The notes: generated by a model from the sequence alone, not told the origin. Shown: positions 5,870 through 63,554, counted from the first letter of the stretch. The stretch is 64,000 nucleotides of DNA from IMGVR_UViG_3300025030_000041:1-64000, one strand, 5' to 3'. Made by a program: numbers and translations.

Positions 5870-5911
5870 GATTTCTAGAGTTTAATTGTTAAACAATAAT
5901 AAAGAACTAAT

Positions 5912-5983
5912 TACAATGTAAAATTAAGCAATAGATTTGATATATAAAAATAAATTTATAATAAAATATATAACTAATTGATA
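5912..5983 (-). promoter_or_regulatory. Early-type promoter with upstream TATCAATTAGTTATAT box
   Basis: Minus strand tcaaatctattgcttaattttacattgta resembles the motif at 14277-14305 and the 46591/49677 repeat; 16-bp box at 5968-5983. Confidence 0.55.
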
Positions 5984-12335: not shown

Positions 12336-12371
12336 TGTTTTTAAATTAAATTTAGTGTTGATAAACCCCCA

Positions 12372-12440
12372 GTACATAACACTCTGTATAATAAATAAAA
12401 ATGTCTATTTTTACGAGTATTTTTTACTTCTCATACCCGC
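12372..12440 (-). mobile_element. Degenerate attC-like hairpin
   Basis: gtacataac core; arms gtataataaataaaaa / tttttacttctcatac; distal core lost. Confidence 0.4.
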
Positions 12441-12624
12441 AAAAAAAATATTGCGTCGCACGGGTGTTCGATTCTAAATCGAGATTCAATTTCCAATTTA
12501 GTTCAGTATATAACTTTCTCTATATTTAGTTCATACGCATCTCACTAAACTACACGATATTTATCGTTAACTGCTGTTTTAATTATGAGTAGCTTGTATT
12601 TCGTCTATACTTTTTTTCATATTC

Positions 12625-13209: not shown

Positions 13210-13597
13210 GTTAGCAACAATAATTAGAACTGCGGTTCTGGAACAGTATAAGGTAATGTTTTAGAATAGCTTAGTTCCCATTCATCAGTTCCTTTTCCTA
13301 TTAATGTTGGGATGTGTCCAATCATATTAAATATCAACTGTTTTGGTTCAACAAAAACTACATCACTTCCAATGCAAGTGTGTTTTACTTCAACAATAGC
13401 GTCTTCACCCAACATGAGGTTTGTCTGGTTTTTGATTGACCAAAACTTAGTTCCTTTGGGAATTAATCTATTTTCTCCTATTTTAATTTCGTTCATAAAA
13501 TATTATTGTTGCTAACGAGGTATATATGCAATACCCTATTAAAGTTTATACTAAATTTTTATTTTTTGTGCAAGGGTACTGCATATATACCCAACCA
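13210..13597 (-). mobile_element. Integron-like gene cassette carrying ORF 13224-13496
   Basis: Perfect 15-bp inverted ends gttagcaacaataat (13210-13224) / attattgttgctaac (13502-13516), then hairpin ggtatatatgcaataccct...agggtactgcatatatacc. Confidence 0.75.
13224..13496 (-). CDS. Cassette-borne hypothetical protein
   Basis: ORF track; exactly fills the space between the inverted ends. Confidence 0.75.
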   Translation of the reverse strand: MNEIKIGENRLIPKGTKFWSIKNQTNLMLGEDAIVEVKHTCIGSDVVFVEPKQLIFNMIGHIPTLIGKGTDEWELSYSKTLPYTVPEPQF

Positions 13598-13616
13598 TTA
13601 GGTGCAATAAAAATTA

Positions 13617-13861: not shown

Positions 13862-13963
13862 GCTTATAACAGCACCTAACAAAAATGGCTGCTACAAGCA
13901 TTGGTTTATAAATTGAAGTTTTATTTAAGCAGTCACTTCAGTTAGCTGCAAAAACATTATATG
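13862..13963 (-). mobile_element. attC-like hairpin
   Basis: gcttataac, arm gcacctaacaaaaatggctgct ... arm agcagtcacttcagttagctgc, aaaac-attatatg (GTT mutated to ATT). Confidence 0.75.
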
Positions 13964-14232: not shown

Positions 14233-14276
14233 AGCATTATATTATATTATTAAATAGTTAAACAATAAAATTAAAT

Positions 14277-14305
14277 ACAATGTAAAATTAAGAAATAGTT
14301 TTGAC
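14277..14305 (-). promoter_or_regulatory. Early-type promoter driving the leftward cassette cluster
   Basis: Minus strand tcaaaactatttcttaattttacattgt shares aaaactatttctta with the 46591/49677 repeat. Confidence 0.55.
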
Positions 14306-14438
14306 ATTTAAAAATAAAATATTTAAATATTTTGTAACATATTGTCTTATAATACATTATTTTTATTAATTATATAAGAGTTTGGAGTTTTTCATATAAT
14401 TAAATTATGGAAATACTTATTAAAATGAGAATAAAAAT

Positions 14439-14494: not shown

Positions 14495-15391
14495 ATGGCA
14501 AAAATAACAAATTTATCTGATTTAATTATAAAAAAGTTTGAGAATAGTACTGATGTTAAATTAGTAAACACGTTTGCTGATATTAGTGATTATATATCAA
14601 CGGGTAATTACTTATTAAATGCTCAACTTAGTGGAAGTTTATTAGGTGGAATACCTAATAATAGAATTACGACTTTAGCCGGTGATAGCGGGACAGGTAA
14701 AACATATTTAGCTCTTAATATTTGTAGGGAAGCCCAGAGAAATGGATATTTTATAGTATATGTAGATACTGAAGCTGCAGTATCAAAAGATATTATGATG
14801 GATTTTGGTATAGATACTGACACATCTAAATTATTATATGCTGGAATATCAAATATTGAAGACTTCGGATTACTTGGTAATAATATTATACAAATATCGA
14901 AAGACCAAAGAGCTAAGGGAGAGACTCCTAAGATATTAATTATATTAGATTCCCAAGGTATGCTAAATTCAAAAAAAGAAATAGATGATTTAAATAAAGG
15001 AAAGAATGCATCTGATATGGGAACTAGAGCTAAAGAATTAAGAAAATTATACAGAAATATAACTTATGAATTTAGTAATAACGGAATTACCTTTATTCCA
15101 TTAAACCACACTTACTGTTTAACGAGTGGGCATAATATTCAAATGGGAGATAATTCTTTAAAAGATATTAAAGATATACAAATTGGTGAATATGTAAAAA
15201 CGTTAGAAGGTAATAAAGAAGTAATAAATACATTTAATTTTGAAAATTTAGAGTTAATAGAATTAACTTTGTCAGATAATACAGTTGTTAAATGTACAAA
15301 AGACCATAAATTTTTAGTATCTAGTAATAATGAATTAATTTGGAAAAATGCAGATGAATTAAATGAAAATGATGAAATTTTAAGTATATAG
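14495..15391 (+). CDS. uvsX: UvsX/RecA recombinase N-fragment fused to a split-intein N part
   Basis: Walker A GDSGTGKT, YVDTE, ILDS, NHTY, then CLTSG... intein with block B CTKDH. Confidence 0.92.
   Translation: MAKITNLSDLIIKKFENSTDVKLVNTFADISDYISTGNYLLNAQLSGSLLGGIPNNRITTLAGDSGTGKTYLALNICREAQRNGYFIVYVDTEAAVSKDIMMDFGIDTDTSKLLYAGISNIEDFGLLGNNIIQISKDQRAKGETPKILIILDSQGMLNSKKEIDDLNKGKNASDMGTRAKELRKLYRNITYEFSNNGITFIPLNHTYCLTSGHNIQMGDNSLKDIKDIQIGEYVKTLEGNKEVINTFNFENLELIELTLSDNTVVKCTKDHKFLVSSNNELIWKNADELNENDEILSI
15116..15391 (+). mobile_element. Split intein N-fragment (91 aa)
   Basis: Starts at Cys208 (CLTSGHNI); TxxH block B; ends at the stop codon. Confidence 0.9.
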
Positions 15392-15417
15392 TAAATTATC
15401 TTAACTAATTAAAAAAA

Positions 15418-15543
15418 ATGAAAGACATGAATACAAAAAAAATTATTAAAAAACGTATAATTGAAAAACAAGAAAAAGTTTTTGATATTGAAGTAAAAGA
15501 TAGTCACCATTATTTTTTAGAAAACGGAGTGATTAGCCATAAT
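15418..15543 (+). mobile_element. Split intein C-fragment (42 aa)
   Basis: Basic N-terminus, block F VFDIEV, HN followed by Ser. Confidence 0.9.
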
Positions 15544-16524
15544 TCAGGTGGAATGTATGAAGCAACTAAGCAAGGCGGCGGGTGTTTAATACCAGGGACT
15601 AAGATATATACATTCAATAATGTATTAAAATCAATAGAAGGTGTTGAGTCTGGTGATTATGTTAAAACCTTATGTGGATATAAAGAAGTTTTAGAAACAT
15701 ATACATTTGAAAAATCTACTATAAAAATAGAATTTGAAGACACCACAAATATAATATGTTCAGAAGACCATCGTTTTTTAATTTCAGGAGACTATACAAT
15801 TGAAAGTAATTGGAAAAAAGCTAAAGACTTAGCTAATAATGAAAATATTTTAAAAATTGAAAATAATAATATTTTCAATTTAAAAATTAAAAATATTAAT
15901 CATTTATATACACAAAAAGTTCATGATATTAGTGTTAAAGATGTACATCATTATATATCTGAAACTGGTATAATAAATCATAATTCAGGAAATACCTATT
16001 CTGCATCAACTATTTTATTTTTATCTAAGTCATCTCTTAAAGAGGACGGCCAAACTAAAACGGGAATTGTAGTAAGATCTAAAACACAAAAAAATCGATT
16101 AGCTAAACCAATTGATATAGAATTCCATATTAGTCATATTAGCGGAATGAATCCGTATGTTGGATTACAAGATTATATTAGTTGGGAAAATTGTGGAGTA
16201 GTTAGAGGTACTCTACTTACTAAAAAAGAATTTGAAAAAGATAAGTCAAATAACCAAAAAACATATCATGAATTCGAACACAATAATGAAAAGTATTATG
16301 TAATTCCGTCTGATAAAGCTAGAAATATAGTTATAAGAGACGGATGTAAAGAAGTTCCATTTAAAAAACTATTTACATCAGAAGTATTTACAGAAAATGT
16401 TATTAAAGAATTAGATGAAAAAGTAATACGACCTAAATTTAAATATGATAAAATTAAAGACTTATTATCTAATGAATTAACTGAAGTTTTTGGTGATACT
16501 ACAGACGATGAATCAGACGAATAA
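15418..16524 (+). CDS. uvsX: UvsX C-fragment: intein C part, 13-aa extein, second mini-intein, C-extein
   Basis: VFDIEV...ISHN/S, then SGGMYEATKQGGG, CLIPG...INHN/S, then SGNTYSASTILFL...KNRLAKP. Confidence 0.92.
   Translation: MKDMNTKKIIKKRIIEKQEKVFDIEVKDSHHYFLENGVISHNSGGMYEATKQGGGCLIPGTKIYTFNNVLKSIEGVESGDYVKTLCGYKEVLETYTFEKSTIKIEFEDTTNIICSEDHRFLISGDYTIESNWKKAKDLANNENILKIENNNIFNLKIKNINHLYTQKVHDISVKDVHHYISETGIINHNSGNTYSASTILFLSKSSLKEDGQTKTGIVVRSKTQKNRLAKPIDIEFHISHISGMNPYVGLQDYISWENCGVVRGTLLTKKEFEKDKSNNQKTYHEFEHNNEKYYVIPSDKARNIVIRDGCKEVPFKKLFTSEVFTENVIKELDEKVIRPKFKYDKIKDLLSNELTEVFGDTTDDESDE
15583..15984 (+). mobile_element. Contiguous mini-intein (134 aa)
   Basis: C1 CLIPGTKI, block B CSEDH, block F VHDISV, terminal HN followed by Ser; no endonuclease domain. 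Confidence 0.9.
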
Positions 16525-21498: not shown

Positions 21499-24400
21499 AT
21501 GGATATATCAAAACTTTTTTTCTTTAATAAAAACGGTGAAAATATAAATTTCACGTTTAATTCGTCTTTAAATAAGTATGAGAGTACTATTTATTTTGAT
21601 AAATTATCAAGTTCTCTATTTGATAATGAAAATCTTTATATTCTAGAAAAGTCCGGTGACTCATATATTTATCCTACTTTTACTGCTACCCAATCCTTAA
21701 AATTTAAATGGAAAACTCTATCTGATAAAGAGAATATCTTTTTATATGATATTGAAACAAGTAATGAAGATAATAACGACTATATTATAACAAAAGACGA
21801 AGTTTTAATATCATATGACCCATCGTTATATGGTGATAAAATTCCATTAAATATTAATATAGCATTTAACCCCTTGGATGAAACTAATTATGAAAGAGTA
21901 TTAGAAATATACTTGCTTGATATAGCTTCACCTGGAACATCCGATTTAATTGGAGAAATAAGTTTTTATGGTGAAGGAATAGACGAAGACGAAAGATATA
22001 GAATATGGTTAGCTAATTTTGGTATTAAATTTAATAGAGAGGATGCTTTAATATTAAAGGATTATGATATAAAAGAGGCTTTACCAAATTGGGAAATTAT
22101 TAATAACAAGCGGAAAGAAGCATTATTAACTAGGCCAGAGGTATACCCATATGTTGGAACATATAAAGGATTGACTAATATTATTAATTTTTTAGGGTTC
22201 AGAGATTTTTTATCAGTAAAAGAGTATTGGCAAAATAAAAACACAGATTCGCCATACTTTAATAAATTTACATTAATTGATATAAGTGATTTATTAGATG
22301 ATGGAAAAATAAATTCTATTGATTTAACTACATATAATAATAACGTTAAATTTACTCCTGAATTTAAAAAAACCGGATTATTAGGATTATATTATAAAAT
22401 AACAGATACAACGGGTGTAGAAGATGCTGACGGAATACCAGAGGTAGTACGAACTACTGAATTCAGCAATGACGAGATTTTATATAAACTTAATAGATTA
22501 AAAGATAAATTAAAAGATGAAATACTTCCAATTAATGTTAAAATTATAGATATAGTTGGTGAGTTTTTATTTTTTCAAAAATTTTCAATTAGAACTTGGA
22601 ATAATAGAGTTGAAATAAAAGATTTTCAAATTAACGAAAATTATGATATATCAGTTTATCCTTTAAATGATACTGAAGCATATTTATATGATCTTAAACC
22701 TCTATTAATAAAAATAAATCAATCTTCTACTAATGTAAATTTCGGAAATTATATATTTAATAATAGCCAGTCAAATCCATATGACTGGTCTCAAAAATAC
22801 CCGCCAACTGATATTCCTTTATTAATTGAATCAATAAAGACTTTTTATAATGAAATACAACAGTCTAAAAAAGATGGATTAAATGAACCATTACCGTGGA
22901 ACTTCGGAGATGAACCTGAAAATATAATTGGATGTCCAGTTATATTTAAAGTTAAGTTTGACGAAATTACATGGGATATATTATCAAATTCAACATGGGA
23001 TAGTCTAGACGATTTTTATACATGGGATACTATAAACTTTAAATCAATTTATGAAATAGAATGGAATATAAGTAAAAAAATCGGAACACCTTACTCTTTT
23101 ACTTATCGAGGATATATAAAAGATTTACATACATTACCTCATTTTTTACCATATGAAGGAGAATATGACGTCTTTGCTAAACTATATGATCTTAACTCTG
23201 GTCATAGCATAAATTATGAAAATAAAATTATAAATGTTAAAAAAATAGAACCTGAAATAATCGCATTATCTAGAATTGAAGATAAATTTGGCGATACTTG
23301 GGATGACTTATCTAATGTAACATGGGATGAAATAGAATCATCATACTGGTATAATCCTATTGTAAACATAGTTAATCAAAATAATAACGAGATAGATTTA
23401 CAAAGAAATTTATACGAGTGGGATTTTTATAAAGATAAAATAAAAGATGCTAAAATATTTAATGACGACACTTTTATATATGAATCCTTAAATACTAGCC
23501 TGCATTCTCTTAAAAATTTATATGGTATACCTAAAAAAGGAGGAAGTGATGTATACGAATGGACATGGGATGATTTTGAAAATGCAACATGGGATGACTT
23601 ATTTCATATGAAATGGTATCATATGGTATATCACTCTGATTTTTTAGCAGGTTTTCTTATTAAGAAACTTCCAAGAAAAGGAGATATTATACAAATGAAT
23701 AAATATTCAGATTTTGTATTTCAAACTACTATGCTAACTTTACAAGATGCAATCGATGAATTGAATTTATCTAGCCATAATGGAATATCGTTATTTAAAT
23801 ATGAGGTTCAAAGTTATCATAAAAAATATAAAGTAACATTAACAAAAAGTACAACTGATTTTACATATGACTTAACGATTAATGAATCTAATATTATATA
23901 TATTGCAACTCCTTTACAAGATATAAATGAAATTAGAGACGCATTGATTAATCTAATTAATAATGAAATTACCCAACATGTTACGGCAATTAGTGCTTCA
24001 AATGATAGTTTTTTAATAATCGGTGATGTGGAAGAAGATGACTATATATTATCAGTAACTAGCCCAAGTTTAATAGATTTTGAATTAATACAAGATCCTG
24101 GTCCATTTATTAGTGCGACTGCAAAAGACTTTGGAAAAGAAAGTTATGTAATTATAAATTATATTTCATCTGGCGATGACGACGACTCTAGTCCATTCTC
24201 ACCAAGAACCTCTAATTTCTTAGAAGGCAACAAATACTCGTATAACGAACCTATTTGGATTTATAATAAATCTCAAATTGAATCTTTAAATAATAAATAT
24301 ATAAGTCTAGATATTGAAAATTTATTTGTTGATGCACCATTTAGCGATATTGCTAATGGAAATACTAATAATATTCAGTATTGGATAGATAATAAATATA

Positions 24401-38191: not shown

Positions 38192-39628
38192 TTATTTATC
38201 TAATTCATTTAGCCTATCAGACAATGCCTTACGCAAAGCTTTATTTTCGAGTCTTTCATTATAAAAATAATTTAATATTTTTCGTGAGACTGAATCAATA
38301 TCCATCCTAAAATATGTATCAAATGCCGTTTTACATATTTTTCTATCTATTAGCTCCTCAATAGATAAATTAAGGCCTTTCCCTAAATATGTATCAGGTG
38401 ATATATTATTGCTACAAATTATGTTCGGATATAGACTAGAAAAGTCCTGACATACTACAGTTTTATAATATCCAGGAATCGGTTCCTTAACGAATGCGCC
38501 TTCATATTTTGGGCCACCTTCATTTTTTTGATACTTTGAGTTATATATTAGTTGTTTTTCTTCTTCTGTTTTTTCAGGTACTTTTAAATTTTGTTCTATG
38601 TATTTTCTAAATATTAGAATTTCACTTATAAATACTGGGCTATTATATTTATTAATATCACATATACTTAAGTTTACCATTTCAAATACAACATCAAGAA
38701 GAAATTTAGAGTCTTCTATTTCTTTTACTAAAATAGAGTCGATAGCATTGTATATTGCAAATTTGCGATAATTTGTTTTATACATTTCTAGTATATTTTC
38801 ATTATCATTTTTAAATTTTTTAACTCCAAGTACTTCTTTTGAAATATAGTCTAATGTATAATTCTCTACAATTTTTAATGGCGACCTGCTTCTAAATAGT
38901 TCAAGGTAGTCTATAACAGCAGTATGAGCTGGAACTAAATATTTTGTTACTCTTTTATTTGTTGCTATATTTTTTGTTGGATTTATTTTTAAATTTTCAC
39001 AGCGTTTCATTAGATATTGCCAGTCAAAATTTAAGAAATTCCATCCAGTTAATAGCGGTATTTTTGGTAGAAATTTATGAAAGAAATACTCTAACATTTC
39101 TATTTCAGTTTTGAACCAAAGATATTTTAAAGTATAGGTTTTTAAATTTGGATTACTTTTTTTAAGATATGTATTCATTTCATTTTCCATATCTTGTTCT
39201 TGACTTCTCAAGTCTTCTCGACACGACAATATATATGCAATATTAGATTCGTTTACTACTGATATTAGAAGAACTTGGTATTTTGCTTCTGATGGTTCTG
39301 GGAATTCATTATTTTCTCCAGTTTCAGTCTCAATATCACAATAATATTTTTTAGGAGTATTAAATTCTGACATTTTATTTTTTTCATCTAGTGTGAGATT
39401 ATTATATAAGAATTCTTCTTGTCTAAAACGTCCTAAATACTCTGTAGGTTTTTTTCTTACATTTTTATTATCCCAACTTTTTAATCCAGTATTTTCTTCA
39501 CAATATTCGTAGTTATATAAATCAGAACTTGGTATATTTTTAATAATAAAGTCTATTTCTTTATTTTTATTAATGTATGATATATACATTTTACTTTTAT
39601 ACTTATTAAATTCAACTCCTACTACCAT
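38192..39628 (-). CDS. 43: Family B DNA polymerase, N-terminal half (exonuclease plus motif A; gp43A-like)
   Basis: DIET (ExoI), GWNFLNFD (ExoII), YNAID (ExoIII), DFSSLYP (motif A); ends before motif B. Confidence 0.9.
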   Translation of the reverse strand: MVVGVEFNKYKSKMYISYINKNKEIDFIIKNIPSSDLYNYEYCEENTGLKSWDNKNVRKKPTEYLGRFRQEEFLYNNLTLDEKNKMSEFNTPKKYYCDIETETGENNEFPEPSEAKYQVLLISVVNESNIAYILSCREDLRSQEQDMENEMNTYLKKSNPNLKTYTLKYLWFKTEIEMLEYFFHKFLPKIPLLTGWNFLNFDWQYLMKRCENLKINPTKNIATNKRVTKYLVPAHTAVIDYLELFRSRSPLKIVENYTLDYISKEVLGVKKFKNDNENILEMYKTNYRKFAIYNAIDSILVKEIEDSKFLLDVVFEMVNLSICDINKYNSPVFISEILIFRKYIEQNLKVPEKTEEEKQLIYNSKYQKNEGGPKYEGAFVKEPIPGYYKTVVCQDFSSLYPNIICSNNISPDTYLGKGLNLSIEELIDRKICKTAFDTYFRMDIDSVSRKILNYFYNERLENKALRKALSDRLNELDK

Positions 39629-43931: not shown

Positions 43932-45015
43932 TAATCATAGTTCTATTGTGTTGGGCTTCTAAAATTTGTTTTATAGTTTCATGTAATGAAATAGTAATTT
44001 TCCAATTTGGATAATCTTTTTGAAATTTAGAATAGTCAGTTACATAAAAAATATGGTCGCCTATTCTAGGGTCATCTAAAAAAGTGTAGTTATTCCATTC
44101 TTTTACATATTTAAATGAATTCATTATATTTATAGCTTCTATAATTGAGCATTCATTTCCGCGCCCGCCACCTGCATTATATACTTCGCCTTGTTTAGGA
44201 TTTTGATAAAAATTCCAAAACATATTTATTAAATCATAACTATGTATATTATCTCTAACTCTTTTTCCTCTATCTCCGAAAATATTATAATGATTTCCTG
44301 TTATTACACATTTAGCCAAATATGATAAAAATCCATGTAATTCAGTTCCAGAATGGGCCGGGCCAGTCAAACACCCGCCTCTAAATATACCAATATTCAT
44401 TCCAAAATATTTACCATATTCTTGACACATTATATCGGCTGAAACTTTAGATGCACCAAATACAGAGTGCTTACTGTTATCAATAGACATAGATTCGTCT
44501 ATTCCATTTTTATAAAATTTATGTGATTGGTCTATTTCAAATCTATTTTCTTTCTCGATTAATGGAAGATAATTTGGAGTATCCCCGTATACTTTATTTG
44601 TACTTGTAAATATAAACACTGCATCTTTACTATAAGTTCTAGTTGCCTCTAATAAATATAAAGTTCCTAGTGCATTAACACTAAAATCTTTAATAGGGTC
44701 CGTCGCTGCCCAATCATGTGACGGTTGTGCTGCCGTGTGAACCACTAAATGTATATCTGAATTATATAATTCAAATATCTTATTTAATTGTTCAACATTT
44801 CTAATATCAATATTATAGTGAATAAATTTTTCTGGATATTTCGTTTTTAATTTATTCGTATTCCATAAGGTAGAAGCCGTTTTACCAAAAAATTCTTCAC
44901 GCATATTATTGTCTATTCCAATAATAATATCAAATTTATTAATAAAAAAATCAACAGCCTCTGACCCAATTAATCCGCCTGATCCAGTTACTATACATAC
45001 TTTATTCTTTTTCAT
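43924..45015 (-). CDS. NAD-dependent NDP-sugar epimerase (CDP-paratose 2-epimerase/RfbE-like)
   Basis: TGSGGLIG, HTAAQPSHD, TSTNKVYG, FGASK, FRGGCLTG. Confidence 0.88.
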   Translation of the reverse strand: MKKNKVCIVTGSGGLIGSEAVDFFINKFDIIIGIDNNMREEFFGKTASTLWNTNKLKTKYPEKFIHYNIDIRNVEQLNKIFELYNSDIHLVVHTAAQPSHDWAATDPIKDFSVNALGTLYLLEATRTYSKDAVFIFTSTNKVYGDTPNYLPLIEKENRFEIDQSHKFYKNGIDESMSIDNSKHSVFGASKVSADIMCQEYGKYFGMNIGIFRGGCLTGPAHSGTELHGFLSYLAKCVITGNHYNIFGDRGKRVRDNIHSYDLINMFWNFYQNPKQGEVYNAGGGRGNECSIIEAINIMNSFKYVKEWNNYTFLDDPRIGDHIFYVTDYSKFQKDYPNWKITISLHETIKQILEAQHNRTMINA

Positions 45016-45183
45016 ATTTTTTATTTTTGTTTTTCAGATGAATACGCTATGAGTGTTGTCGAAATGATAACTAACATTTCGTAATTAGTTGGCTGAACTC
45101 CATACATTAAAAGATTTAGAGTTACATAAATGTCTAGTAGTACTACTAAACTTAAAATAATAGTATTTAATAAATTTTTCATG

Positions 45184-46446
45184 TTATTTGTTTTTAATTA
45201 ATTCTTTTAAATCATTAATAATTATATGAGCTGACTTTTCATATGACTCGTAATCATATCCTATTTTTTTACAAAGACTACTATAGTTAGTATACTCGGT
45301 ATTATTTGTATTTATTATTTCAACTGCTTTTATAATACATTCTGATAATGAGTTAACCTCAATTTCATTAGATTCATTTACTTCACAAAAGAATGGGTAA
45401 TTTGTATTATTTGAATGTTTAAATTTATACCAATAATTATTAACTTTTGGCATAATTGTAATATTTCCTGCTATTAGGGCTTCACAATGAGTTACTCCGC
45501 CATGAACCTCATTTGTAAATAAATTACAACTCACACGTGCTCTATTTATAAAAGTTAAATAATCTTCTCTTGACCAATTTAAATTATTAGGTAGTACCTC
45601 TACTGTATTATTAGATAAAGTATTAATTAAACTTAATTGTTCTTCTGTTACCTTTCTAGTTGGATTAAGCATTATTGCTTTAAATGGTATATTAGTTTTA
45701 GATTTTGCAAGTCCTACTGCTTCAGCGAACTTATGATAATTATTATATCTATTCGCTGAATCTGATATTCTATTACCAAAATAGATAGTTGTTTCATCAA
45801 ATTTCGAAACACTAGAATATTTTAATACTTCTTTAGCCCATACCCCAATATTCCAGCTTGTTGTTTTTTTAATTAAATTTCTATTTTTATAAAATGTATC
45901 ATACGCGTCTAACGATTCTCTTTCATTTTCTTTAGATTGAAATGCTGTTAAATTTGAATTATTAAAGCTTTCCATTTGTCTTTCAAAATATGTAATCTGT
46001 TCTGACACTTTTTTAGATACAGGAGTATCCATAAAATAATTAGTACTAACAATTGGAATATTTAATTTTAATTCATAAAATAAAGTATTCCAGTTTTTAG
46101 TTAATGTATTTTGGTCATTAATCATTACGTCACATTCTTTTAATAAATTATATTGTTTTTTCCAAAATATATAATCAAAATGGTATCTAGTATTAGACGG
46201 CCCAACTGGAGAATCAAATTCTATAAAAGTTATTCTAGAGTGATATTTTTGTTCAAACATACTATAGTATGTCCAATACTCTTTGGATAATCTAATGTCT
46301 GGAATAGCAATTAAAAAAGATATATTACTATCATTTTCTAAAATTTCTGATATTATTCCAATACATATATTCATACATGCGTCTGTACTTAGTATAAAGT
46401 TCTTTCCATCATTATTACTTATTTGAGTAGCATAAAATACTTTCAT
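45184..46446 (-). CDS. GT-B glycosyltransferase-like protein (probable start MKVFY)
   Basis: YFGNR, SREDYL...EVHGGVTHCEAL; the promoter at 46464-46492 favours the 46446 start. Confidence 0.6.
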   Translation of the reverse strand: MKVFYATQISNNDGKNFILSTDACMNICIGIISEILENDSNISFLIAIPDIRLSKEYWTYYSMFEQKYHSRITFIEFDSPVGPSNTRYHFDYIFWKKQYNLLKECDVMINDQNTLTKNWNTLFYELKLNIPIVSTNYFMDTPVSKKVSEQITYFERQMESFNNSNLTAFQSKENERESLDAYDTFYKNRNLIKKTTSWNIGVWAKEVLKYSSVSKFDETTIYFGNRISDSANRYNNYHKFAEAVGLAKSKTNIPFKAIMLNPTRKVTEEQLSLINTLSNNTVEVLPNNLNWSREDYLTFINRARVSCNLFTNEVHGGVTHCEALIAGNITIMPKVNNYWYKFKHSNNTNYPFFCEVNESNEIEVNSLSECIIKAVEIINTNNTEYTNYSSLCKKIGYDYESYEKSAHIIINDLKELIKNK

Positions 46447-46590
46447 AACACTTTTTTTGAAACAATATATTTGAAAACTCATACAATGTTTTATAAAATT
46501 TTAGCGTTTTTAGAAATAATGTGTATAATTAAATAATATAATGTATTAAATGCCAATCATTTATAGTATACTATTATATTTAATTTGGGA

Positions 46591-46641
46591 AAATATTTTA
46601 ATATATTAAAACTATTTCTTATTTTTGTATTAAATATAACG
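46591..46641 (+). promoter_or_regulatory. 51-bp promoter platform (copy 1) ending in the cassette core TAAC
   Basis: 49/51 identical to 49677-49727; contains TAttTTTG (Bacteroidota -7 element). Confidence 0.8.
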
Positions 46642-46730
46642 GCCGGTACTTTATGCCCAGTTTGCCATACGGACACTTAACATTTAGCAGTAGAGTTGAT
46701 GACAAACTTGTATAAAGTAATTGTTATAAA
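46633..46730 (+). mobile_element. attC-like hairpin
   Basis: aatataac-ggccgg-tactttatgcccagtttgccat ... atgacaaacttgtataaagta-att-gttataaa. Confidence 0.75.
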
Positions 46731-46798
46731 ATCGGTGTGGTTAGTTTAGTAGAATGTTAATTAAAAATTTAAACAAAACTATTTAAAACAAAAAAAAG

Positions 46799-47212
46799 AT
46801 GACGACAAATAATTTAAGAGAAAAAACAGTTTTACAAATTACAGAAATTGTAAAAGAATATTGTAAAACTGCAGAACCAACAAATGTGTATTTGGCTTTC
46901 AAAAAAGAGGTGGACAAACCATTGATGATTGAAACAAAATACCCAATACCTAATGAAAATATTACAGTAATGATTTCGGATATTAGAAAAGATTGGCAAT
47001 TACCATTAGCAGGAACAAAGGATATTGGAAACCCAAAATTAAAAGAGATGAGCCGAGAAGATTTTGAAAAAACATTTGATATATTATCATATACTGTACA
47101 GGAAGAAAGCCAAATAATTATGAAAGTAATTGATAAATTGGGATTACATAAATGGGAACATGAAGGAAAATTAAAACAGTTTCATTACTATCAAGGAAGT
47201 TATAACAAATAG
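46799..47212 (+). CDS. Cassette-borne hypothetical protein
   Basis: ORF track; follows the hairpin. Confidence 0.7.
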   Translation: MTTNNLREKTVLQITEIVKEYCKTAEPTNVYLAFKKEVDKPLMIETKYPIPNENITVMISDIRKDWQLPLAGTKDIGNPKLKEMSREDFEKTFDILSYTVQEESQIIMKVIDKLGLHKWEHEGKLKQFHYYQGSYNK

Positions 47213-47276
47213 GGTGTAGGCTTTTTATTTATTAAATTTTTTAAAAGAAATGATAATACGACGTGATAAAGTAAGC

Positions 47277-47340
47277 CTTTTTGCCGAGCCTGTGTTATAA
47301 GGCGAAGCGAACAGTTGGTTTTTCGCCAATGGCTTATAAT
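47277..47340 (+). mobile_element. Half attC-like site plus 47-bp empty mini-cassette
   Basis: tttttgccgagcctgt-gttataag...cttataat; no ORF between the inverted cores. Confidence 0.55.
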
Positions 47341-47460
47341 GGTGTCAGGCTTGGCGAAGTGATTAAACCTGAAGCTAAATAGAATAACTAAACTTTAAAA
47401 TTAAGAACAAATGACAAATAGAATTACTGAACATTCATTTTGCCAAACACATGTTAGTGG
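47333..47460 (+). mobile_element. attC-like hairpin containing the start codon of ORF 47411
   Basis: cttataat-ggtgtca-ggcttggcgaagtg ... cattttgccaaacac-at-gttagtgg. Confidence 0.7.
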
Positions 47461-47746
47461 CAGTTTATCTTTGGAAACGATTGCTGATTATGTTACAAAA
47501 AAAGATTTATCTGTGCATAAAAAAATATGTAATTTGTGGTTAAAATCAGGAAACAAAGCAGAAGATTTTCCTAAACTACCGCCTTGTTGGATGGATGTTG
47601 AAATAACATTAAAAAATGGTAAAAAATATAAATCTTTTTTAGTGAGTATAAATAATTGTGGTGATACTCAATTCGTGATTAATAGAATGTTTAAAGAAAG
47701 GATTTATTTAGATATGGATGAAGTTGTTAGTTGGGAGTTCGTTTAA
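47411..47746 (+). CDS. Cassette-borne hypothetical protein
   Basis: Ends gttagtggcagttta / taaattgcaactagc are near-complementary. Confidence 0.7.
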   Translation: MTNRITEHSFCQTHVSGSLSLETIADYVTKKDLSVHKKICNLWLKSGNKAEDFPKLPPCWMDVEITLKNGKKYKSFLVSINNCGDTQFVINRMFKERIYLDMDEVVSWEFV

Positions 47747-47808
47747 ATTGCAACTAGCAGTTTTGCGTATAAAAAATCGTTTTAATGTTTTTTATACGAT
47801 GTTAGCAG
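47744..47808 (+). mobile_element. Short attC-like hairpin
   Basis: caactagc-agttttg-cgtataaaaaa ... ttttttatacg-at-gttagcag; perfect 11-bp stem. Confidence 0.7.
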
Positions 47809-47873
47809 TATGTATTATTTTTGTTTTTACCTTATTAAAAAAATAACTATGGAAGTATTTATCAAAAAAACAT

Positions 47874-48215
47874 ATGACTATAAGTGATATACCTGAAAAA
47901 TGGGTAATTATAAAAATAGATGGCCCTATTGGAACATTTTATAAAGTATTTAGTACTTGGGCAGGTGGGTATTTAGGTACAGATAAGTGGAAGCTCAATT
48001 CTGGAATTGATAAAGTTAATACGGATGATGAGTATTATTATTTTATTGGGTTTAGTGGAAGCTGCTATAAGTGTCACAAAAAAACATATGGATTAGCTAC
48101 TCAATTTGGGTTTAGAGTTTTAAATAATATTGTAGAAAAAAGCGATAGGAAGATTAGCGTATTAGAAGATAAGCCAGATTGGGAGTCTTTTTTTAATTTA
48201 ATAAATAATTTTTAA
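47874..48215 (+). CDS. Conserved phage hypothetical protein
   Basis: PEKWVIIK...W.GGYL..D.WKLNSGI...G.SGSCYKC, a family common in large phages. Confidence 0.7.
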   Translation: MTISDIPEKWVIIKIDGPIGTFYKVFSTWAGGYLGTDKWKLNSGIDKVNTDDEYYYFIGFSGSCYKCHKKTYGLATQFGFRVLNNIVEKSDRKISVLEDKPDWESFFNLINNF

Positions 48216-48217
48216 AT

Positions 48218-48787
48218 ATGAAATTTAACGACTGGTTTACTACTAGATTAATTGTTAATAAGTTTCCATTACCTTCTGAAATTTTAAAAGCACACTATGA
48301 CTACATTATTAATGTTAGTGATGAATACTCAGGTGAGTGCCATGACACTGCAATGGAAAGAGGTATTAAATATTTTTGGTTTCCAATGAATGAGCGAGTA
48401 GGTGATATGGGTTTAAACAGTTTATATGCAGCATTAAAAATAATATGGCAAGTCGAACAAGAGGGAGCTTCTGTATTACTTCATTGTCATGCTGGAGTTA
48501 ATAGAAGTCCAACAGTGAGAGATGCGTACTATTTTTTACGTACAAAAAAACATAGAGAAGAAATTGTGTTTGATGAAGAAATTGAAGAACGATTAACTGA
48601 ATGGTTAAATTTGGGTAAATCAATTAATGGAAAAAATAACATGCTACTTGAAAACATTAGAAAAGGACACTTACCCTCTATTAATAAAATGGAATCTTTT
48701 TTGAGACATTGTGAAGTTCAATTTAAAAAAGAAGAAACTGATAACAGCGGCGGACTTGACAAGTGTAAAGGTAATGCTGGGATTTAG
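48218..48787 (+). CDS. Dual-specificity/tyrosine phosphatase
   Basis: HCHAGVNRS (CX5R). Confidence 0.88.
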   Translation: MKFNDWFTTRLIVNKFPLPSEILKAHYDYIINVSDEYSGECHDTAMERGIKYFWFPMNERVGDMGLNSLYAALKIIWQVEQEGASVLLHCHAGVNRSPTVRDAYYFLRTKKHREEIVFDEEIEERLTEWLNLGKSINGKNNMLLENIRKGHLPSINKMESFLRHCEVQFKKEETDNSGGLDKCKGNAGI

Positions 48788-48847
48788 CAATTAAAAGAAT
48801 CAGTAAGTATTTTGAAATAAATAAATTTATAAAAAATATTTTTTTGT

Positions 48848-49597
48848 GTGAAACCTAAAAAAAAGAAATTAACCCGAGAAGATGAACAAGAATTATTAGA
48901 AATAACTAATAAAACATTTAATCCAGACATTTTATCAAGTATACATATTGAAATAAAATGTAAATCAGAAAATCAAAAGAAATTATTAAATTCAATAAAA
49001 GAAAATGATGTTACTATATGTATAGGACCAGCTGGATGTGGTAAAACTATATTATCATGTGCGGAAGCTTTAATTTTATTAAAAACACATAGAGACATAT
49101 ACTCAAAAATTGTTTTAACTAAATCTATAACTCAACTTCGTAATGAAGATATAGGAATATTACCAGGGGATGAGAAAGATAAATTAAAATTATATATGGC
49201 ATCATATATGGATTCATTTAATAAATTAATTGGTGAGTACTTAACTAATAAATTAATTGAGTTAGGCCTAATTAAATTTGAAGCTCTAGGTACATTAAGA
49301 GGACGGTCTTTTGATAATGTTATTCTAATAAGTGATGAATTTCAAAATGTTAATCATGATAACGCTAAAACTCTATTAACTAGAATGTCACAAAATAGTA
49401 AATTTATTATTTTAGGGGATACTGACCAAATAGATATTAAAAATAAAAAAGATAGTTCTTTAGAGTTTATTCATAAAAAAATAAATGAAAATCCAATGGA
49501 TGGGGTTGGAGCAGTCGAATTAACAAATAGTGATATTGTAAGACATAAATTAACTTCATATTTTATAAATTTATTTAACGAACTTAAAACTTTATAG
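48848..49597 (+). CDS. phoH: PhoH-like ATPase
   Basis: GPAGCGKT, GILPG, LRGRSF, DEFQN, LTR, GDTDQID. Confidence 0.93.
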   Translation: MKPKKKKLTREDEQELLEITNKTFNPDILSSIHIEIKCKSENQKKLLNSIKENDVTICIGPAGCGKTILSCAEALILLKTHRDIYSKIVLTKSITQLRNEDIGILPGDEKDKLKLYMASYMDSFNKLIGEYLTNKLIELGLIKFEALGTLRGRSFDNVILISDEFQNVNHDNAKTLLTRMSQNSKFIILGDTDQIDIKNKKDSSLEFIHKKINENPMDGVGAVELTNSDIVRHKLTSYFINLFNELKTL

Positions 49598-49676
49598 CGT
49601 AATCATTTATTATTTAGTAGATTGATTATCAATTAATTATATTTACTTGTTATATTTAGTTCAAAAATAAAGTACT

Positions 49677-49727
49677 AAATATTTTAATATATCAAAACTA
49701 TTTCTTATTTTTGTATTGAATATAACG
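49677..49727 (+). promoter_or_regulatory. 51-bp promoter platform (copy 2) with upstream TATCAATTAATTATAT box
   Basis: 49/51 identical to 46591-46641; box at 49627-49642. Confidence 0.8.
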
Positions 49728-49818
49728 TTTTGCAGGTAGGCGATAGTGAGGCTTACCACAAAGTTTAAATCAAAGCACTCAGGCTCATAACGGCAATATC
49801 GCCTACCTGATGTTAGGT
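49720..49818 (+). mobile_element. attC-like hairpin
   Basis: atataac-gttttg-caggtaggcgata ... tatcgcctacctg-at-gttaggt; perfect 13-bp stem. Confidence 0.8.
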
Positions 49819-49864
49819 GTCTGTAAAAAAATAAATTTAGTGTGGCAATTAAACAATTTACAAA

Positions 49865-50092
49865 ATGAAAATTAAGAAACTTATCAGCCAACACCGCAGG
49901 GATTTCACCGCCTTAATGGAATGTGAATTTTGCCAACATCAAGAAATGGATAATTCAGGTTATGATGACCGATATTATCACGACAATGTAATACCAAATA
50001 TGAAGTGTAAAAAATGCGGTGAATCAACGATAAGTAAAGGCGGTGAAATTGAAAGGACCCCAACTAAATATCCAGAGGGATTCCAAATTTGA
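49865..50092 (+). CDS. Cassette-borne Zn-ribbon protein
   Basis: CEFC...CKKC. Confidence 0.75.
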   Translation: MKIKKLISQHRRDFTALMECEFCQHQEMDNSGYDDRYYHDNVIPNMKCKKCGESTISKGGEIERTPTKYPEGFQI

Positions 50093-50125
50093 GTGTTGGG
50101 TGCAGTTGGAAAATAAAATAAAAAT

Positions 50126-50677
50126 ATGATTGATTACAAAATAATATCAGATTCAATTAATTACTATGAAAGTAAAGGGTTTATTAGGATTGAAACCCCT
50201 TGGACTGTTTCAGAGTATATTGATAATTTAACTAAGCCAAAAGACATGTTATCTTTTCAATTAAAACATAACAGTAAGTGCTTAGTAGCTTCTGGCGAAC
50301 AGAGTTTTTTATACCTATATTTAAAAGACTTCTTACCAAAGGGACAATTTCAAACAACAACACCATGTTTTAGATTTGAAAGTTTTGACTATTCACACAC
50401 TAAGTATTTTATTAAAAATGAACTAATAAAAACCGATGTTGTAAATAATGCTGAACTTGATAAAGTAGTAGAATATTGTTTTAATTTTTTGAAAGGATGT
50501 ATACCTGAAATAGAAATAATTCAAACTAGCATAGGGTTTGATATTGAGTATAAAGGTAATGAATTAGGTTCATACGGAATAAGAGAAAATGAGTTTTTGA
50601 AATGGATATATGCAACTGGTTGTGCTGAACCAAGATTGAGTAAAATAATTAATTTGTATAAAAATGGGTTATCATAA
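50126..50677 (+). CDS. Stand-alone class II aminoacyl-tRNA-synthetase-like catalytic domain
   Basis: ASGEQSF, motif 2 PCFRFE, ELGSYG, motif 3 ATGCAEPRL; only 183 aa. Confidence 0.7.
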   Translation: MIDYKIISDSINYYESKGFIRIETPWTVSEYIDNLTKPKDMLSFQLKHNSKCLVASGEQSFLYLYLKDFLPKGQFQTTTPCFRFESFDYSHTKYFIKNELIKTDVVNNAELDKVVEYCFNFLKGCIPEIEIIQTSIGFDIEYKGNELGSYGIRENEFLKWIYATGCAEPRLSKIINLYKNGLS

Positions 50678-50909
50678 AAGAAAAATAACAAAAGGAGTTT
50701 TAGGTGAGTATTCTAAAATACAAGAAGAAATGGAAGAACTAAAAGATGCGGTTGAATAAGAAGATAAAGTTCTTCAAATATGCGAATTGACCGATTTAAT
50801 TGGGGCTATTGAAAGTTTTTCTGAACTAAAATTTGGATTAAATTTAGAGGATTTGAAGAAATTTTCTGATAAAACAAAATCCGCATTTAAAGAAAAAAAG
50901 AGAGGGTAG
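50664..50909 (+). pseudogene. MazG-like NTP pyrophosphatase interrupted by an in-frame TAA
   Basis: MGYHKRKITKGVLGEYSKIQEEMEELKDAVE*EDKVLQICELTDLIGAIE...; TAA at 50757-50759. Confidence 0.65.
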
Positions 50910-51163
50910 AAAAAAAAAAGAAAAAGATTCACAGGCAGGAACTCTATTTGGGAACGAAATGTAGCACTTGTTTATAATGGCTGACGATATGTTTAAACTA
51001 TAATAAAATCAGTATTATGAACGAAAAAATTATAAAGATTTGTAAACAAAACTTATATACACTATGATTTACACCTTTTTTATGAAGCGCTAATTAAATT
51101 TAAAATAATGAAACAAATATTATTTTTTTTAATATAATAATTTTTAAAATTATTCAAATGTAG

Positions 51164-62511: not shown

Positions 62512-62873
62512 ATTTTAATGCTTATACGTATACCAATAGTTAAATTCAAATGATTATAGAACTAATAATTTTCTTTTTAAAAGTTTGGTCTATTTTATGG
62601 ACTATACTTTTAGTTTTAATAATATATTCTAGTGCTGTGTTAAACTTAAAAAGACTAGAATTTAACCTTAATTTGAAAACCTGTGCGGAATTATCGCTGT
62701 ATATTACTTCAATATACACATGGTTTTTATAAAAAAGATAAAAATACCAACTATTGATTATAAATAGCAAGTTGCAACGGAAACTTAATGGTGTCAAAAA
62801 TGTCATTTCAGAGTATTATCATAGATATTTTCTTTACTACGTTATATATAGGGGTGATTTAAAACTATAAAAA

Positions 62874-63116
62874 ATGATAACAGAAAAAGAATACTTAAAA
62901 GCAAAAATGATTGTTGAAGCATATGAATGTGAGCAATTGAATAAACCTGCTAGTATAAGCCATATGAAGTGCTGCGACAACCAAGATATAGAAATATTTT
63001 ATAAAAACACCAGTAATAAGGATGGGAGTGGAAGAATGGGTGTTACTCATAAGATATTTAAATGCAAGAATTGTGTTATGCAATCGGCTTTTATTTGTCA
63101 AATGTTTAATAATTAA
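62874..63116 (+). CDS. Hypothetical protein, probably cassette-derived
   Basis: EQLNKPASISH resembles the hairpin-encoded QLNISEVSH of the next gene. Confidence 0.55.
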   Translation: MITEKEYLKAKMIVEAYECEQLNKPASISHMKCCDNQDIEIFYKNTSNKDGSGRMGVTHKIFKCKNCVMQSAFICQMFNN

Positions 63117-63141
63117 ATACTTAAAAAATAAAAACAGAATT

Positions 63142-63429
63142 ATGTTAGAAAACGAAAACTTGAATGAACCACAAAAAACGCAATTGAATATAAGTGAGGT
63201 TAGCCACAATTGTATTTGTTGCGGAAAAGAAATAAAGAAACTTGATGGACTGCCAAAAGATAAGGATTGGGAAGGTATGTGGAATGGTGGAATAGTTGAA
63301 AAGATAAGTGCTGGGTATGGCAGTTTACTTGATGGAGATATGTATGTTTTGGCTATATGCGATGACTGTGTAAAGTTGAAACAGCTAAAATACGTTGGTA
63401 ACTATATGTTCCCAGACAATTGTGACTAA
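63142..63429 (+). CDS. Cassette-borne Zn-finger protein (start MLENENL)
   Basis: CICC...CDDC; bounded by gttagccacaattgt (63199) / acaattgtgactaac (63416), 14/15 complementary. Confidence 0.7.
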   Translation: MLENENLNEPQKTQLNISEVSHNCICCGKEIKKLDGLPKDKDWEGMWNGGIVEKISAGYGSLLDGDMYVLAICDDCVKLKQLKYVGNYMFPDNCD

Positions 63430-63554
63430 CTGATGACACTAACAGTCAGGTGGGGATTAAATGCACCGTACTTTCACTTGACGATAAGCTTCATTAGACA
63501 CAAGATAGCTTCAATGTGACACAAGCCCCCACTTGCTGTTATTGTATGTTATGG
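63424..63554 (+). mobile_element. attC-like hairpin
   Basis: gactaac-tgatg-acactaacagtcaggtgggg ... ccccacttgctgttattgt-at-gttatgg. Confidence 0.78.

Follow-up and report, generated by a model that had tools for sequence, protein, structure and literature searches.

Integrons, consisting of IntI, attI, Pc and attC cassette arrays, carry arrays of mostly promoterless single-ORF cassettes separated by imperfect hairpins of variable sequence and conserved structure, and a promoter placed just before a recombination core expresses whatever follows. They are thought to be bacterial and rare in Bacteroidota, and in phages they are known only from captured integrons in a few temperate phages and from short predicted attC clusters (CALINs), with 2-3 predicted attC sites in the published cases (PMC9892861). 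A second type of modular element, the PeSL (promoter-early stem-loop) of T4-type phages, combines a stem-loop with an early promoter, lies between small ORFs of unknown function in hyperplastic regions and coincides with indels and gene swaps (PMC2839356, PMC4122927). Folded single-stranded recombination sites are also used by mobile elements that exploit Xer/dif systems, e.g. CTX phage, and long imperfect hairpins between the early genes of phage T7 are processed by RNase III. Here we describe a promoter-like module and a hairpin family in a huge phage that share features with each of these systems; we found no published description of this recombinase-linked system in phages.

The window analysed here is the first 64 kb (64,000 nucleotides) of a 246-kb contig, IMGVR_UViG_3300025030_000041, of an uncultured, 25% GC huge phage from groundwater that is distantly related to Lak-type megaphages and most likely infects Bacteroidota. 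The first-pass annotation had reported a 51-bp repeat that ends exactly at a cassette core, where two unrelated hairpins begin, and had interpreted it as the functional equivalent of an integron Pc/attI, i.e. a landing pad just downstream of an early promoter read by the host RNA polymerase. The repeat itself is real: the copy at 46591-46641 matches the query exactly, the copy at 49677-49727 has 2 mismatches (49/51 identical), and no matches occurred in 100 dinucleotide-preserving shuffles. Identity ends after TAACG, with GCCGG following in copy 1 and TTTTG in copy 2, whereas leftwards similarity continues weakly, with a 10-nt indel. The features are as follows.

46591..46641 (+): repeat copy 1, the right half of the promoter-like module, ending in ATATAAC-G; it sits in the divergent intergenic region, 159 nt upstream of ORF 46799-47212.
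46620..46627 (+): TATTTTTG, a match to the Bacteroidota -7 box TAnnTTTG; the transcription start is predicted a few bases downstream, at about 46632-46636, inferred from the usual layout of Bacteroides promoters.
46633..46730 (+): hairpin A, a member of the TAAC...GTTA hairpin family, with 5' foot TAAC at 46637-46640 and 3' foot GTTA at 46723-46726.
47213..47352 (+): conserved spacer element after ORF137, 90% identical to contig 158282-158421, ending at TTATAAT-GG (47333-47342); in the paralogous copy this is TTATAAC followed by a 235-bp cassette.
47751..47808 (+): short hairpin of the same family between ORF111 and ORF113 (27.9 bits, E=0.008), with a degenerate 5' foot (TAGC) and 3' foot GTTAGCAG.
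49603..49727 (+): module copy 2 at its full 125 nt, with the palindrome ATTGATTATCAAT (49621-49633), a left arm (49649-49670), a 34-nt spacer and a right arm (49705-49726) that ends in TAAC.
49677..49727 (+): repeat copy 2, with TATTTTTG at 49706-49713.
49719..49845 (+): hairpin C plus a conserved tail, with feet TAAC at 49723-49726 and GTTA at 49812-49815 and a 13-bp stem; the unit is 89-92% identical in two unrelated phage contigs, starting exactly at TAAC.
13509..13604 (-): best-scoring hairpin of the family in the window (80.9 bits), within the leftward cluster downstream of the related promoter at 14.3 kb.
13863..13963 (-): second hairpin of the family in the leftward cluster (48.1 bits), with 5' foot GCTAAC.
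14269..14344 (-): diverged relative of the module, 78% identical to 5905-5980, sharing CAAAACTATTTCTTAATTTT; it sits at the second divergence point of the window and is oriented toward the leftward cluster.
5905..5980 (-): second diverged relative of the module, lying between two leftward genes.
63437..63544 (+): TAAC...GTTA-flanked hairpin after ORF 63022-63429, with a 9-bp GC-rich stem, not detected by the covariance model.
50989..51060 (+): remnant of the 5' end of a recombinase cassette (ATG at 51017, about 16 codons, then a stop), repeated at contig 68615-68687 and 108901-108974 and matching the start of the recombinase gene in relatives.

The observation of a duplicated 51-bp sequence ending at TAAC is thus confirmed, but it needs two corrections. 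Firstly, the repeat is not a pair. It is the right half of a module of 125-156 nt, and the 125-nt unit of copy 2 is 90-98% identical to 9 other places in the same contig. We found 13 copies in the 123 kb of the 246-kb contig that were examined, and Logan word depth, which is 334 on the module against about 20 on its flanks, suggests about 16 copies per genome. Assemblies break at the repeats, and no trustworthy alternative joints were found there. Secondly, TAnnTTTG alone is weak evidence for a promoter in this 25% GC genome, as it occurs at 0.87 per kb in intergenic DNA against 0.89 per kb in coding DNA. The related sites at 5920-5939(-) and 14284-14303(-) share the 20-nt core CAAAACTATTTCTTAWTTTT, with 5 hits at up to 3 mismatches against 0.55 expected, and the leftward clusters at 14.3 kb and 5.9 kb do carry the same hairpins, as the first-pass annotation had indicated.

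Ten of the 13 module copies end in ATATAAC and are then followed by unrelated sequence. That most other copies would lack a hairpin had been named beforehand as an outcome that would speak against the cassette-core idea, but at least 9 of the 13 copies are followed directly by a hairpin closed by TAAC...GTTA. The GC-rich hairpins behind the two copies differ in primary sequence but belong to one structural family: a covariance model of the family (R1) scores 46633-46730 at 40.9 bits (E=1.7e-5; not in the seed) and 49719-49819 at 47.6 bits (in the seed). The conserved site consists of a 13-nt lower strand ending in TAAC, a 4-5 nt bulge, a stem of about 20 bp, a large loop, a 1-2 nt bulge and GTTA. 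TAAC...GTTA-flanked hairpins number 12 in the contig, against a mean of 1.4 for control 4-mers, and 234 in 71 related phage loci, where this 4-mer ranks at the top of all 256 (median of the others is 7). In an alignment of 71 members the TAAC/GTTA feet are invariant in 71 of 71 sequences, and RNAalifold gives 25 pairs, of which 17 show compensatory changes. There are two length classes, about 85-90 and 120-129 nt. Compared with the RYYYAAC and GTTRRRY ends of attC sites, the full 7-nt consensus is only partly matched and the bulge geometry is 4-5/1-2 nt. The hairpins have a polarity: 215 of 234 have the longer bulge on the 5' side in the gene direction, and the sense strand is the more stable in 202 of 215. 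The full window gave no Rfam hit at gathering score, 46500-50200 gave only noise at E up to 5, and no tRNA was found. A hammerhead-like CUGAUGA read by eye in one hairpin subfamily was rejected, since it is simply part of the stem and no GAAA box follows.

The hairpins separate single small ORFs in arrays. Contig 156-161 kb has 12 junctions with one ORF between most of them, and the window has the same layout at 46.6-50.1 kb and 13.4-14.3 kb. Several comparisons place the exchange points of these units at the hairpin feet. The 235-bp one-ORF cassette is 99% identical in three contexts, with both ends exactly at TAAC. Hairpin C recurs at 89-92% identity in two other phages (L064 and L084), where it begins at TAAC behind unrelated, non-promoter sequence that also ends in TAAC. 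HSP starts fall at TAAC in 30% of cases against 2.5% at random. Near-identical genome pairs differ by cassette swaps bounded by TAAC: the pair L101/L102 shows a hairpin swap and a 935-versus-1215-nt replacement, and L073 and L074 differ from L090 by a 2.4-kb indel that starts right after TATAAC. We also asked whether TAACGKTTTGCAGGT is a general extended core, but it has only two distinct instances.

The arrays encode tyrosine recombinases, with two intact paralogs and the start of a third inside the arrays, each preceded by GCTAAC. The recombinases are 271 and 267 aa long and are accompanied by a 56-aa ORF. They have the Phage_integrase catalytic domain (PF00589, 121.7 bits) and a SAM-like N-terminal domain (PF13495), and the best PDB matches are XerC-like 4a8e and XerA 5hxy. 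The curated XerA model scores 169-195 bits, below its 220-bit cut-off, so these are family relatives of the Xer type and not equivalogs. The integron-integrase model TIGR02249 scores 135 and 171 bits against a 265-bit cut-off, aligned in two stretches, and against VchIntIA (2a3v) only 24 residues (query residues 180-203) stand opposite IntI residues 180-249, i.e. the insertion that defines integron integrases is lacking. The recombinases score below every curated family cut-off. In total 219 relatives occur in viral contigs, most with such hairpins, and the hairpin family co-occurs with multi-copy recombinases in more than 200 uncultured AT-rich phage contigs. In Bacteroidota genomes, R1 finds 42 hairpins, 41 of them on the strand opposite the recombinase and all downstream of it, but none in 8 control viral loci. 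There the strand antisense to the recombinase is the more stable in 26 of 35, and it is also the strand that matches R1. Flavobacterium saccharophilum shows a recombinase followed by five ORF-hairpin units. GenBank phages have no nucleotide match to 45000-51000 or to hairpin C, and the best recombinase match among them is 36% identity, to integrases of Polaribacter and Cellulophaga phages. PhoH relatives gave no close synteny partner (next best 57% amino-acid identity), and a test of whether stop-codon recoding changes the gene map gave no decisive result and was not needed.

The interpretation as a cassette landing pad is partly supported. TAAC is a genuine cassette boundary and different units follow the same TAAC, but the module is not a single attI/Pc-like pad. 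It has about 16 copies, none of the 13 in the 123 kb examined is adjacent to a recombinase start, and it occupies the place of an ORF between two hairpins. Three copies (156 nt) are themselves bounded by TAAC on both sides, and their AT-rich left part is itself detected as a hairpin of the family. Every cassette 3' end offers the same TAAC, and the module end is one of many equivalent junctions.

We propose, with moderate confidence, that the 51-bp repeat is the body of an ORF-less promoter unit that carries a promoter-like sequence (TATTTTTG, 13 nt before the end) and ends in the same ATAAC as every cassette. Transcription would start a few bases before TAAC, the next hairpin would become the 5' end of the mRNA and the promoterless ORFs behind it would be expressed. 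The Xer-type recombinases encoded inside the arrays would act on the folded sense strand, as an integron integrase acts on a folded attC, cutting at the 5' foot (TAA/C), and the unit would be a mobile promoter cassette spread to about 16 places. What the sequence comparisons show is that TAAC, and its inverse GTTA, is the breakpoint of cassette duplication and exchange; that the recombinases are active on these sites and carry out the exchange, and that the module is a promoter, read by the host RNA polymerase and early in infection, are inferred. A search for RNA runs found the sequence only in DNA runs of groundwater metagenomes, so promoter and direction are inferred from position and one motif. 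The module sits upstream of co-directional small ORFs, a member lies at both divergence points of the window (46.5 kb and 14.3 kb), and the -7 box is conserved in 11 of 13 copies. However, the -33 TTTG is absent at 19-21 nt upstream, a position that is the most variable patch of the module, and the two-box promoter is not enriched in the contig, with no match on any module. The module is nearly symmetric, with TAGTTTTG and TATTTTTG on the opposite strand. A sigma-70 and terminator consensus scan was uninformative (41 promoter-like sites against 52 expected). The module has no match in any relative, and a search of metagenome contigs for its end returned only the same contig and chance matches; the two samples that hold the phage are 100% identical. 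In relatives, canonical promoters sit directly before start codons rather than before TAAC. Moreover, breakpoints occur at both feet, after TAAC and before GTTA, which a strict one-strand integron mechanism does not predict.

An alternative that seems unlikely, but cannot be dismissed, is that the hairpins are RNA elements of the polycistronic mRNA, either processing or stability signals like the RNase III sites of T7 or translational controls, with the module as a PeSL-like terminator-promoter composite. Shuffling would then arise from ordinary or microhomology-driven recombination at these conserved sequences, with selection keeping only junctions at gene punctuation and without a dedicated recombinase. 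The greater stability of the sense strand and the G.U pairs conserved at fixed positions fit an RNA function equally well, the phage hairpins are always co-oriented with the genes, and helices of about 20+5 bp are long enough for a double-strand-specific RNase. Several start codons lie inside the loops of the 120-135 nt class, and breakpoints also occur at TAnnTTTG boxes in the genome pairs L044/L049 and L104/L105. On the other hand, the same family lies next to homologous recombinases in bacterial chromosomes on the strand antisense to the ORFs, where the mRNA would carry A.C mismatches, and the multi-copy recombinase sits inside the arrays and is conserved with the hairpins across more than 200 phage contigs. 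Several junctions share nothing but TAAC, for example TAAC followed by TATTATATA before the recombinase genes and TAAC followed by AAGTATAT, and four bases is too short for homologous exchange.

It is also unlikely that the module is no promoter at all but a selfish miniature inverted-repeat element (22-nt arms GTTATAT...ATATAAC around 34 nt), or a protein-binding or terminator element, that has spread through the arrays using the same cores. Its inverted arms are 86% complementary, the fold z-score is -3.0 to -3.5, a perfect palindrome (ATTGATTATCAAT) lies upstream, and copies are 90-100% identical, far more than a promoter needs; the missing -33 box and the absence from relatives point the same way. 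Against this, orientation is strictly tied to the downstream genes in all 13 copies, a copy lies at each divergent junction, where a promoter must exist, and the three copies that lost TAAC include the two that also lost the G of the -7 box, as if they were decaying together. A classical integron carried by a phage is very unlikely: AAC/GTT feet, variable sequence with conserved structure, two length classes and arrays of single ORFs would fit, and CALINs have been reported in a few phages, but the defining integrase feature is lacking, there is no single attI, the hairpins are inverted relative to the ORFs and the promoter is multi-copy.

More tentatively, and somewhat less likely than not, a previously undescribed integron-like gene-cassette system may exist in huge AT-rich phages of Bacteroidota and, in inverted form, in Bacteroidota chromosomes, using Xer-type recombinases without the IntI domain and attC-like hairpins with TAAC/GTTA feet. 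In the phages the sites fold on the sense strand and may double as mRNA leaders, and promoters would themselves be mobile, ORF-less cassettes, of which the 51-bp repeat is one. The finding points to a dense cassette architecture in a large lineage of uncultured huge phages, with a plausible dedicated recombinase and a sister system in the likely hosts. That would offer a mechanism for how huge phages accumulate and shuffle hundreds of small accessory genes and might trade them with their hosts. The promoter cassette would add expression signals that move by the same cores as the genes, and model R1 gives a way to map such arrays in metagenomes.

Compared with integrons and CALINs, this locus shares arrays of mostly promoterless single-ORF cassettes, hairpins with AAC and GTT feet, an inferred crossover at the foot of the hairpin, strand asymmetry through a bulge, a predicted role for a tyrosine recombinase of the Xer/IntI branch and a promoter-like sequence just before a core. 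It differs in that the recombinase lacks the IntI-specific insertion, is multi-copy and itself sits in a cassette, both feet act as breakpoints, and the promoter-like sequence is a repeated ORF-less unit. The recombinogenic strand of integrons is the bottom strand relative to the cassette ORFs, whereas here the well-folding strand is the sense strand, so that the hairpin precedes its ORF. The arrays lie in a virulent-looking huge phage and in more than 200 related contigs. It resembles PeSLs as a highly conserved, multi-copy unit between small ORFs of unknown function in the hyperplastic regions of a large myovirus-like phage, with an AT-rich stem-loop as part of the module and a promoter-like sequence of a different type. 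PeSLs, however, carry sigma-70 -35/-10 promoters and short GC stem-loop terminators, and no dedicated recombinase or conserved 4-nt core has been shown for them, while here the unit ends in a core shared with covarying hairpins of about 90-130 nt that are linked to a recombinase. XerA, XerC-like and XerD are the closest solved relatives of the recombinase, and a folded single strand can mimic a duplex recombination site, but Xer acts at one chromosomal dif site, whereas this phage has tens of sites per genome, several divergent recombinase paralogs (51% identity) and cassette arrays. Like the RNase III hairpins of T7, the hairpins are long, imperfect, carry an asymmetric internal loop and lie on the sense strand between genes, although cleavage would be by analogy only and the same family lies on the antisense strand in the bacterial arrays next to recombinase homologs.

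The 51-bp repeat reported by the first-pass annotation is real, as it occurs as an exact match at 46591-46641 and with 2 mismatches at 49677-49727, whereas none was found in 100 dinucleotide-preserving shuffles. Identity between both copies ends after TAACG. The sequence TATTTTTG is located at 46620-46627 and 49706-49713, and ORFs on the same strand start 159 and 139 nt after the TAAC.

The source contig (IMG/VR 3300025030_000041, 246,115 bp, with the window at bases 1-64000) was also found in a second sample with 100% identity, and the public runs in which the sequence was detected are groundwater DNA metagenomes, with no RNA run among them. Its GC content is about 25%. The portal protein is 30-40% identical to those of uncultured phages of 460-735 kb and of Prevotella Lak phages, and other genes encode PhoH, a gp55-like sigma factor, a family B DNA polymerase and an intein-bearing RecA-like protein. 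It is therefore a huge phage related to lineages assigned to Bacteroidota hosts. The RecA/UvsX-like gene (14495-16524) carries intein splicing domains and a 76-nt direct repeat (15473-15548 and 15914-15989) that encodes HNS-type intein ends, so there may be two inteins or a duplicated one. The family B DNA polymerase ORF (38192-39628, minus strand) covers only the exonuclease domain and the first part of the polymerase domain and the next ORF downstream is a metallophosphoesterase, which means that the gene may be split, interrupted or read through a stop. A 1101-aa ORF contains a repeated 43-nt coding motif (ACATGGGATGA...) at 22969-23629, of which four copies at 70-74% identity suggest a repeat domain in a large structural protein.

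Pattern scans of the viral collection returned further pieces of the same contig. In the 123 kb of the 246 kb that were examined, the repeat proved to be part of a module of about 125 nt that is present in 13 copies. From left to right the module contains:
an AT-rich stem-loop that includes the palindrome ATTGATTATCAAT;
a left arm, GTTATATTTAGTTCAAAAATAA;
a 34-nt spacer;
a right arm, TTATTTTTGTATTAAATATAAC.
The palindrome is a perfect 6-1-6 palindrome (49621-49633 in the window) that lies about 95 nt upstream of the module end and is conserved in most copies, and it resembles a binding site for a dimeric regulator. The second copy of the window (49603-49727) is 90-98% identical to 9 other copies, while the first copy keeps only the right half well. 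Word depth in the source assemblies is 334 on the module and about 20 beside it, which implies roughly 16 copies per genome. All copies point in the same direction as the ORFs behind them. One copy is located at the 46.5-kb divergence point, a diverged relative (14269-14344, minus strand) at the 14.3-kb divergence point, and another lies at 5905-5980.

Ten of the 13 copies end in ATATAAC and then continue with unrelated sequence. At least nine are followed directly by a hairpin whose feet are that TAAC and a downstream GTTA; seven of these hairpins were found with a covariance model and two by inverted-repeat search or by eye. The three copies whose ends have mutated away from TAAC have no hairpin, and two of them have also lost the G of the -7 box. 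The outcome named beforehand as contradicting the cassette reading, that most other copies would not be followed by hairpins, is therefore not what was observed.

Hairpins flanked by TAAC...GTTA number 12 in the 123 kb, against a mean of 1.4 (maximum 4) for the other one-GC 4-mers, and they lie between nearly all ORFs at contig 156-161 kb, 64-78 kb and 228-238 kb. The junction consensus drawn from 212 sites in related phages is ATTGC-n-TATAAC / GGTTGGG on the 5' side and TT / GTTAT-a-n-GCAGTT on the 3' side (the slash marks the junction here and below), with bulges of 4-5 nt on the 5' side and 1-2 nt on the 3' side, and with lengths that cluster at 85-90 and 120-129 nt. In hairpins of 120-137 nt (contig 75294-75430, 76724-76855, 158635-158758 and 234904-235021) the start codon of the following small ORF lies inside the loop and the 3' arm is coding sequence, which hints at translational control or at dual constraints. 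An alignment of 71 members, including 49719-49819, gave 25 consensus pairs, of which 17 show compensatory changes, often with 3-4 pair types, and G.U pairs are conserved at fixed positions on the gene-sense strand. The sense strand is more stable in 202 of 215 hairpins, by a mean of 5.6 kcal/mol. The covariance model built from this alignment (R1) gave the following hits.

Hits of covariance model R1 in the window (coordinates, strand, score)
13509-13604, minus strand, 80.9 bits, the best hit
13863-13963, minus strand, 48.1 bits
49719-49819, plus strand, 47.6 bits, in the seed
46633-46730, plus strand, 40.9 bits, E=1.7e-5, not in the seed
47751-47808, plus strand, 27.9 bits, a short form

R1 also detected the AT-rich left part of the extended module. 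The two hairpins that the first-pass annotation considered unrelated are therefore two members of one structural family, and the module itself consists of a hairpin followed by a roughly 70-nt ORF-less unit, bounded GTTAT...ATAAC, in the position that an ORF normally occupies. A weak R1 hit at 12373-12446 falls in a GC-richer intergenic stretch (12327-12476, minus strand) that contains a TPsiC-arm-like GGGTGTTCGATTC, although ARAGORN calls no tRNA there; positions 12327-12381 are 88-90% identical to three related phage loci.

Several comparisons show that TAAC is a breakpoint. A 235-bp unit with a 56-aa ORF is 99% identical at contig 75302-75531, 158409-158638 and 234575-234804, where its left neighbours are the module, a spacer element and another small ORF. 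All three junctions read TAAC / (A or G)GTTTGCAGG, and all three right ends read CTGCTAAC / followed by different sequence. The ORF (75345-75515, 158452-158622 and 234591-234761; it begins MITEKQYLKAKK) thus has its own TAAC-bounded cassette, and the window holds a diverged paralog at 62873-62960. In several related phages its homolog lies a few hundred bases upstream of the recombinase, so it may be an accessory factor. Three module copies extend leftwards to a further TAAC / GTTCTG boundary, and the recombinase genes are preceded by GCTAAC / TATTATATA. The hairpin behind the second module copy, with a 30-nt tail, is 89-92% identical in L064 and L084, two loci from other metagenomes with unrelated flanks, where it follows ...CCTATAAC and ...GTGCCTAAC rather than a promoter module. 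Among 200 nucleotide matches between our contig and 78 related loci, 30% start at a TAAC and 30% end at a GTTA, against a random expectation of about 2.5%.

Near-identical genome pairs among the related loci provide direct cases. L101 and L102 differ by a hairpin swap bounded by TAACG / and / TTGTTTAG, and by a 935-versus-1215-nt replacement bounded by TAAC on both sides, resolved to within 6 nt. L090 has 2.4 kb more than L073 and L074, starting exactly after GTGTATAAC. Some breakpoints fall elsewhere, however. One cassette shared with locus L100 begins at the 3' foot, GTTATAACC, and in two near-identical phage pairs (L044/L049 and L104/L105) homology breaks at TAnnTTTG boxes just before start codons. 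Promoters may therefore also serve as exchange points in this lineage, as proposed for PeSLs.

Two intact tyrosine recombinase genes lie inside the arrays, one encoding 271 aa at contig 77341-78156 and one encoding 267 aa at 233720-234523, which are 51% identical to each other. The start of a third lies at 161196. The window itself holds only a 5' remnant at 50989-51060. This is one copy of a 73-nt repeat that is 95% identical in three places (also contig 68615-68687 and 108901-108974), is preceded by an (AT)n run in two of them, and holds an ATG plus about 16 codons that match the start of the recombinase gene in many related phages; it looks like what remains of a decayed recombinase cassette. 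The proteins have the Phage_integrase and SAM-like domains, and their best matches are the XerA model (169-195 bits against a 220-bit cut-off) and the XerA/XerC-like structures. They match the integron-integrase model in two pieces only, with 24 residues where VchIntIA has 70.

The recombinase family has 219 relatives at 50-59% identity on IMG/VR contigs, many of which are longer than 100 kb. In many of the 71 non-redundant loci, and in their sum, TAAC is the top-ranking hairpin flank of all 256 4-mers. In bacterial genomes the relatives are 41-48% identical and are mostly from Bacteroidota. There, R1 found 42 hairpins, of which 41 lie on the strand opposite the recombinase and all lie downstream of it, and it found none in eight control viral loci that lack the recombinase. 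In Flavobacterium saccharophilum DSM 1811 (locus L185, 5779-12443) the recombinase passes the curated model named 'tyrosine recombinase/integron integrase' (222 bits against 220) and is followed by five ORF-hairpin units with the typical attC placement. At this locus and at other bacterial loci (among L106-L185), Bacteroidota chromosomes carry a Xer-type recombinase without the IntI insertion, followed by arrays of ORF plus an approximately 130-nt hairpin with TAAC/GTTA feet. These look like integron-type arrays that integrase-based finders would not call complete integrons. In the bacterial arrays the better-folding strand is antisense to the recombinase, and in the Flavobacterium array also to the ORFs, as in integrons, while in the phages it is the sense strand.

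The multi-copy module, the covarying hairpin family, the cassette-like arrays, the breakpoints at the hairpin feet and the co-occurrence with a recombinase family in both phages and bacteria are all demonstrated by the analysis. That the module is a rightward promoter is only inferred, from its position and from the -7 box; the -33 box is missing, the motif is common by chance, and the opposite strand carries two more such boxes. It is likewise an inference that the recombinase acts on the folded sense strand and cuts at the 5' foot, which would explain why the junction is TAAC / in the gene direction. The integron-like DNA reading does not exclude an RNA role for the hairpins (5' leader, processing, translation), and the G.U pairs on the sense strand make a dual role plausible. 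The interpretation of the first-pass annotation is partly supported, in that TAAC is a cassette boundary, but the module is not a single attI/Pc-like landing pad.

In a literature search that covered the large-phage papers it returned only in part, we found no description of this hairpin-recombinase system. The closest known systems are integrons and the PeSL elements of T4-type phages. For PeSL, no close relative of the phage was found that carries the module. The phage system fails the criteria for membership in the integron family on the integrase domain, on attI/Pc and on strand polarity.
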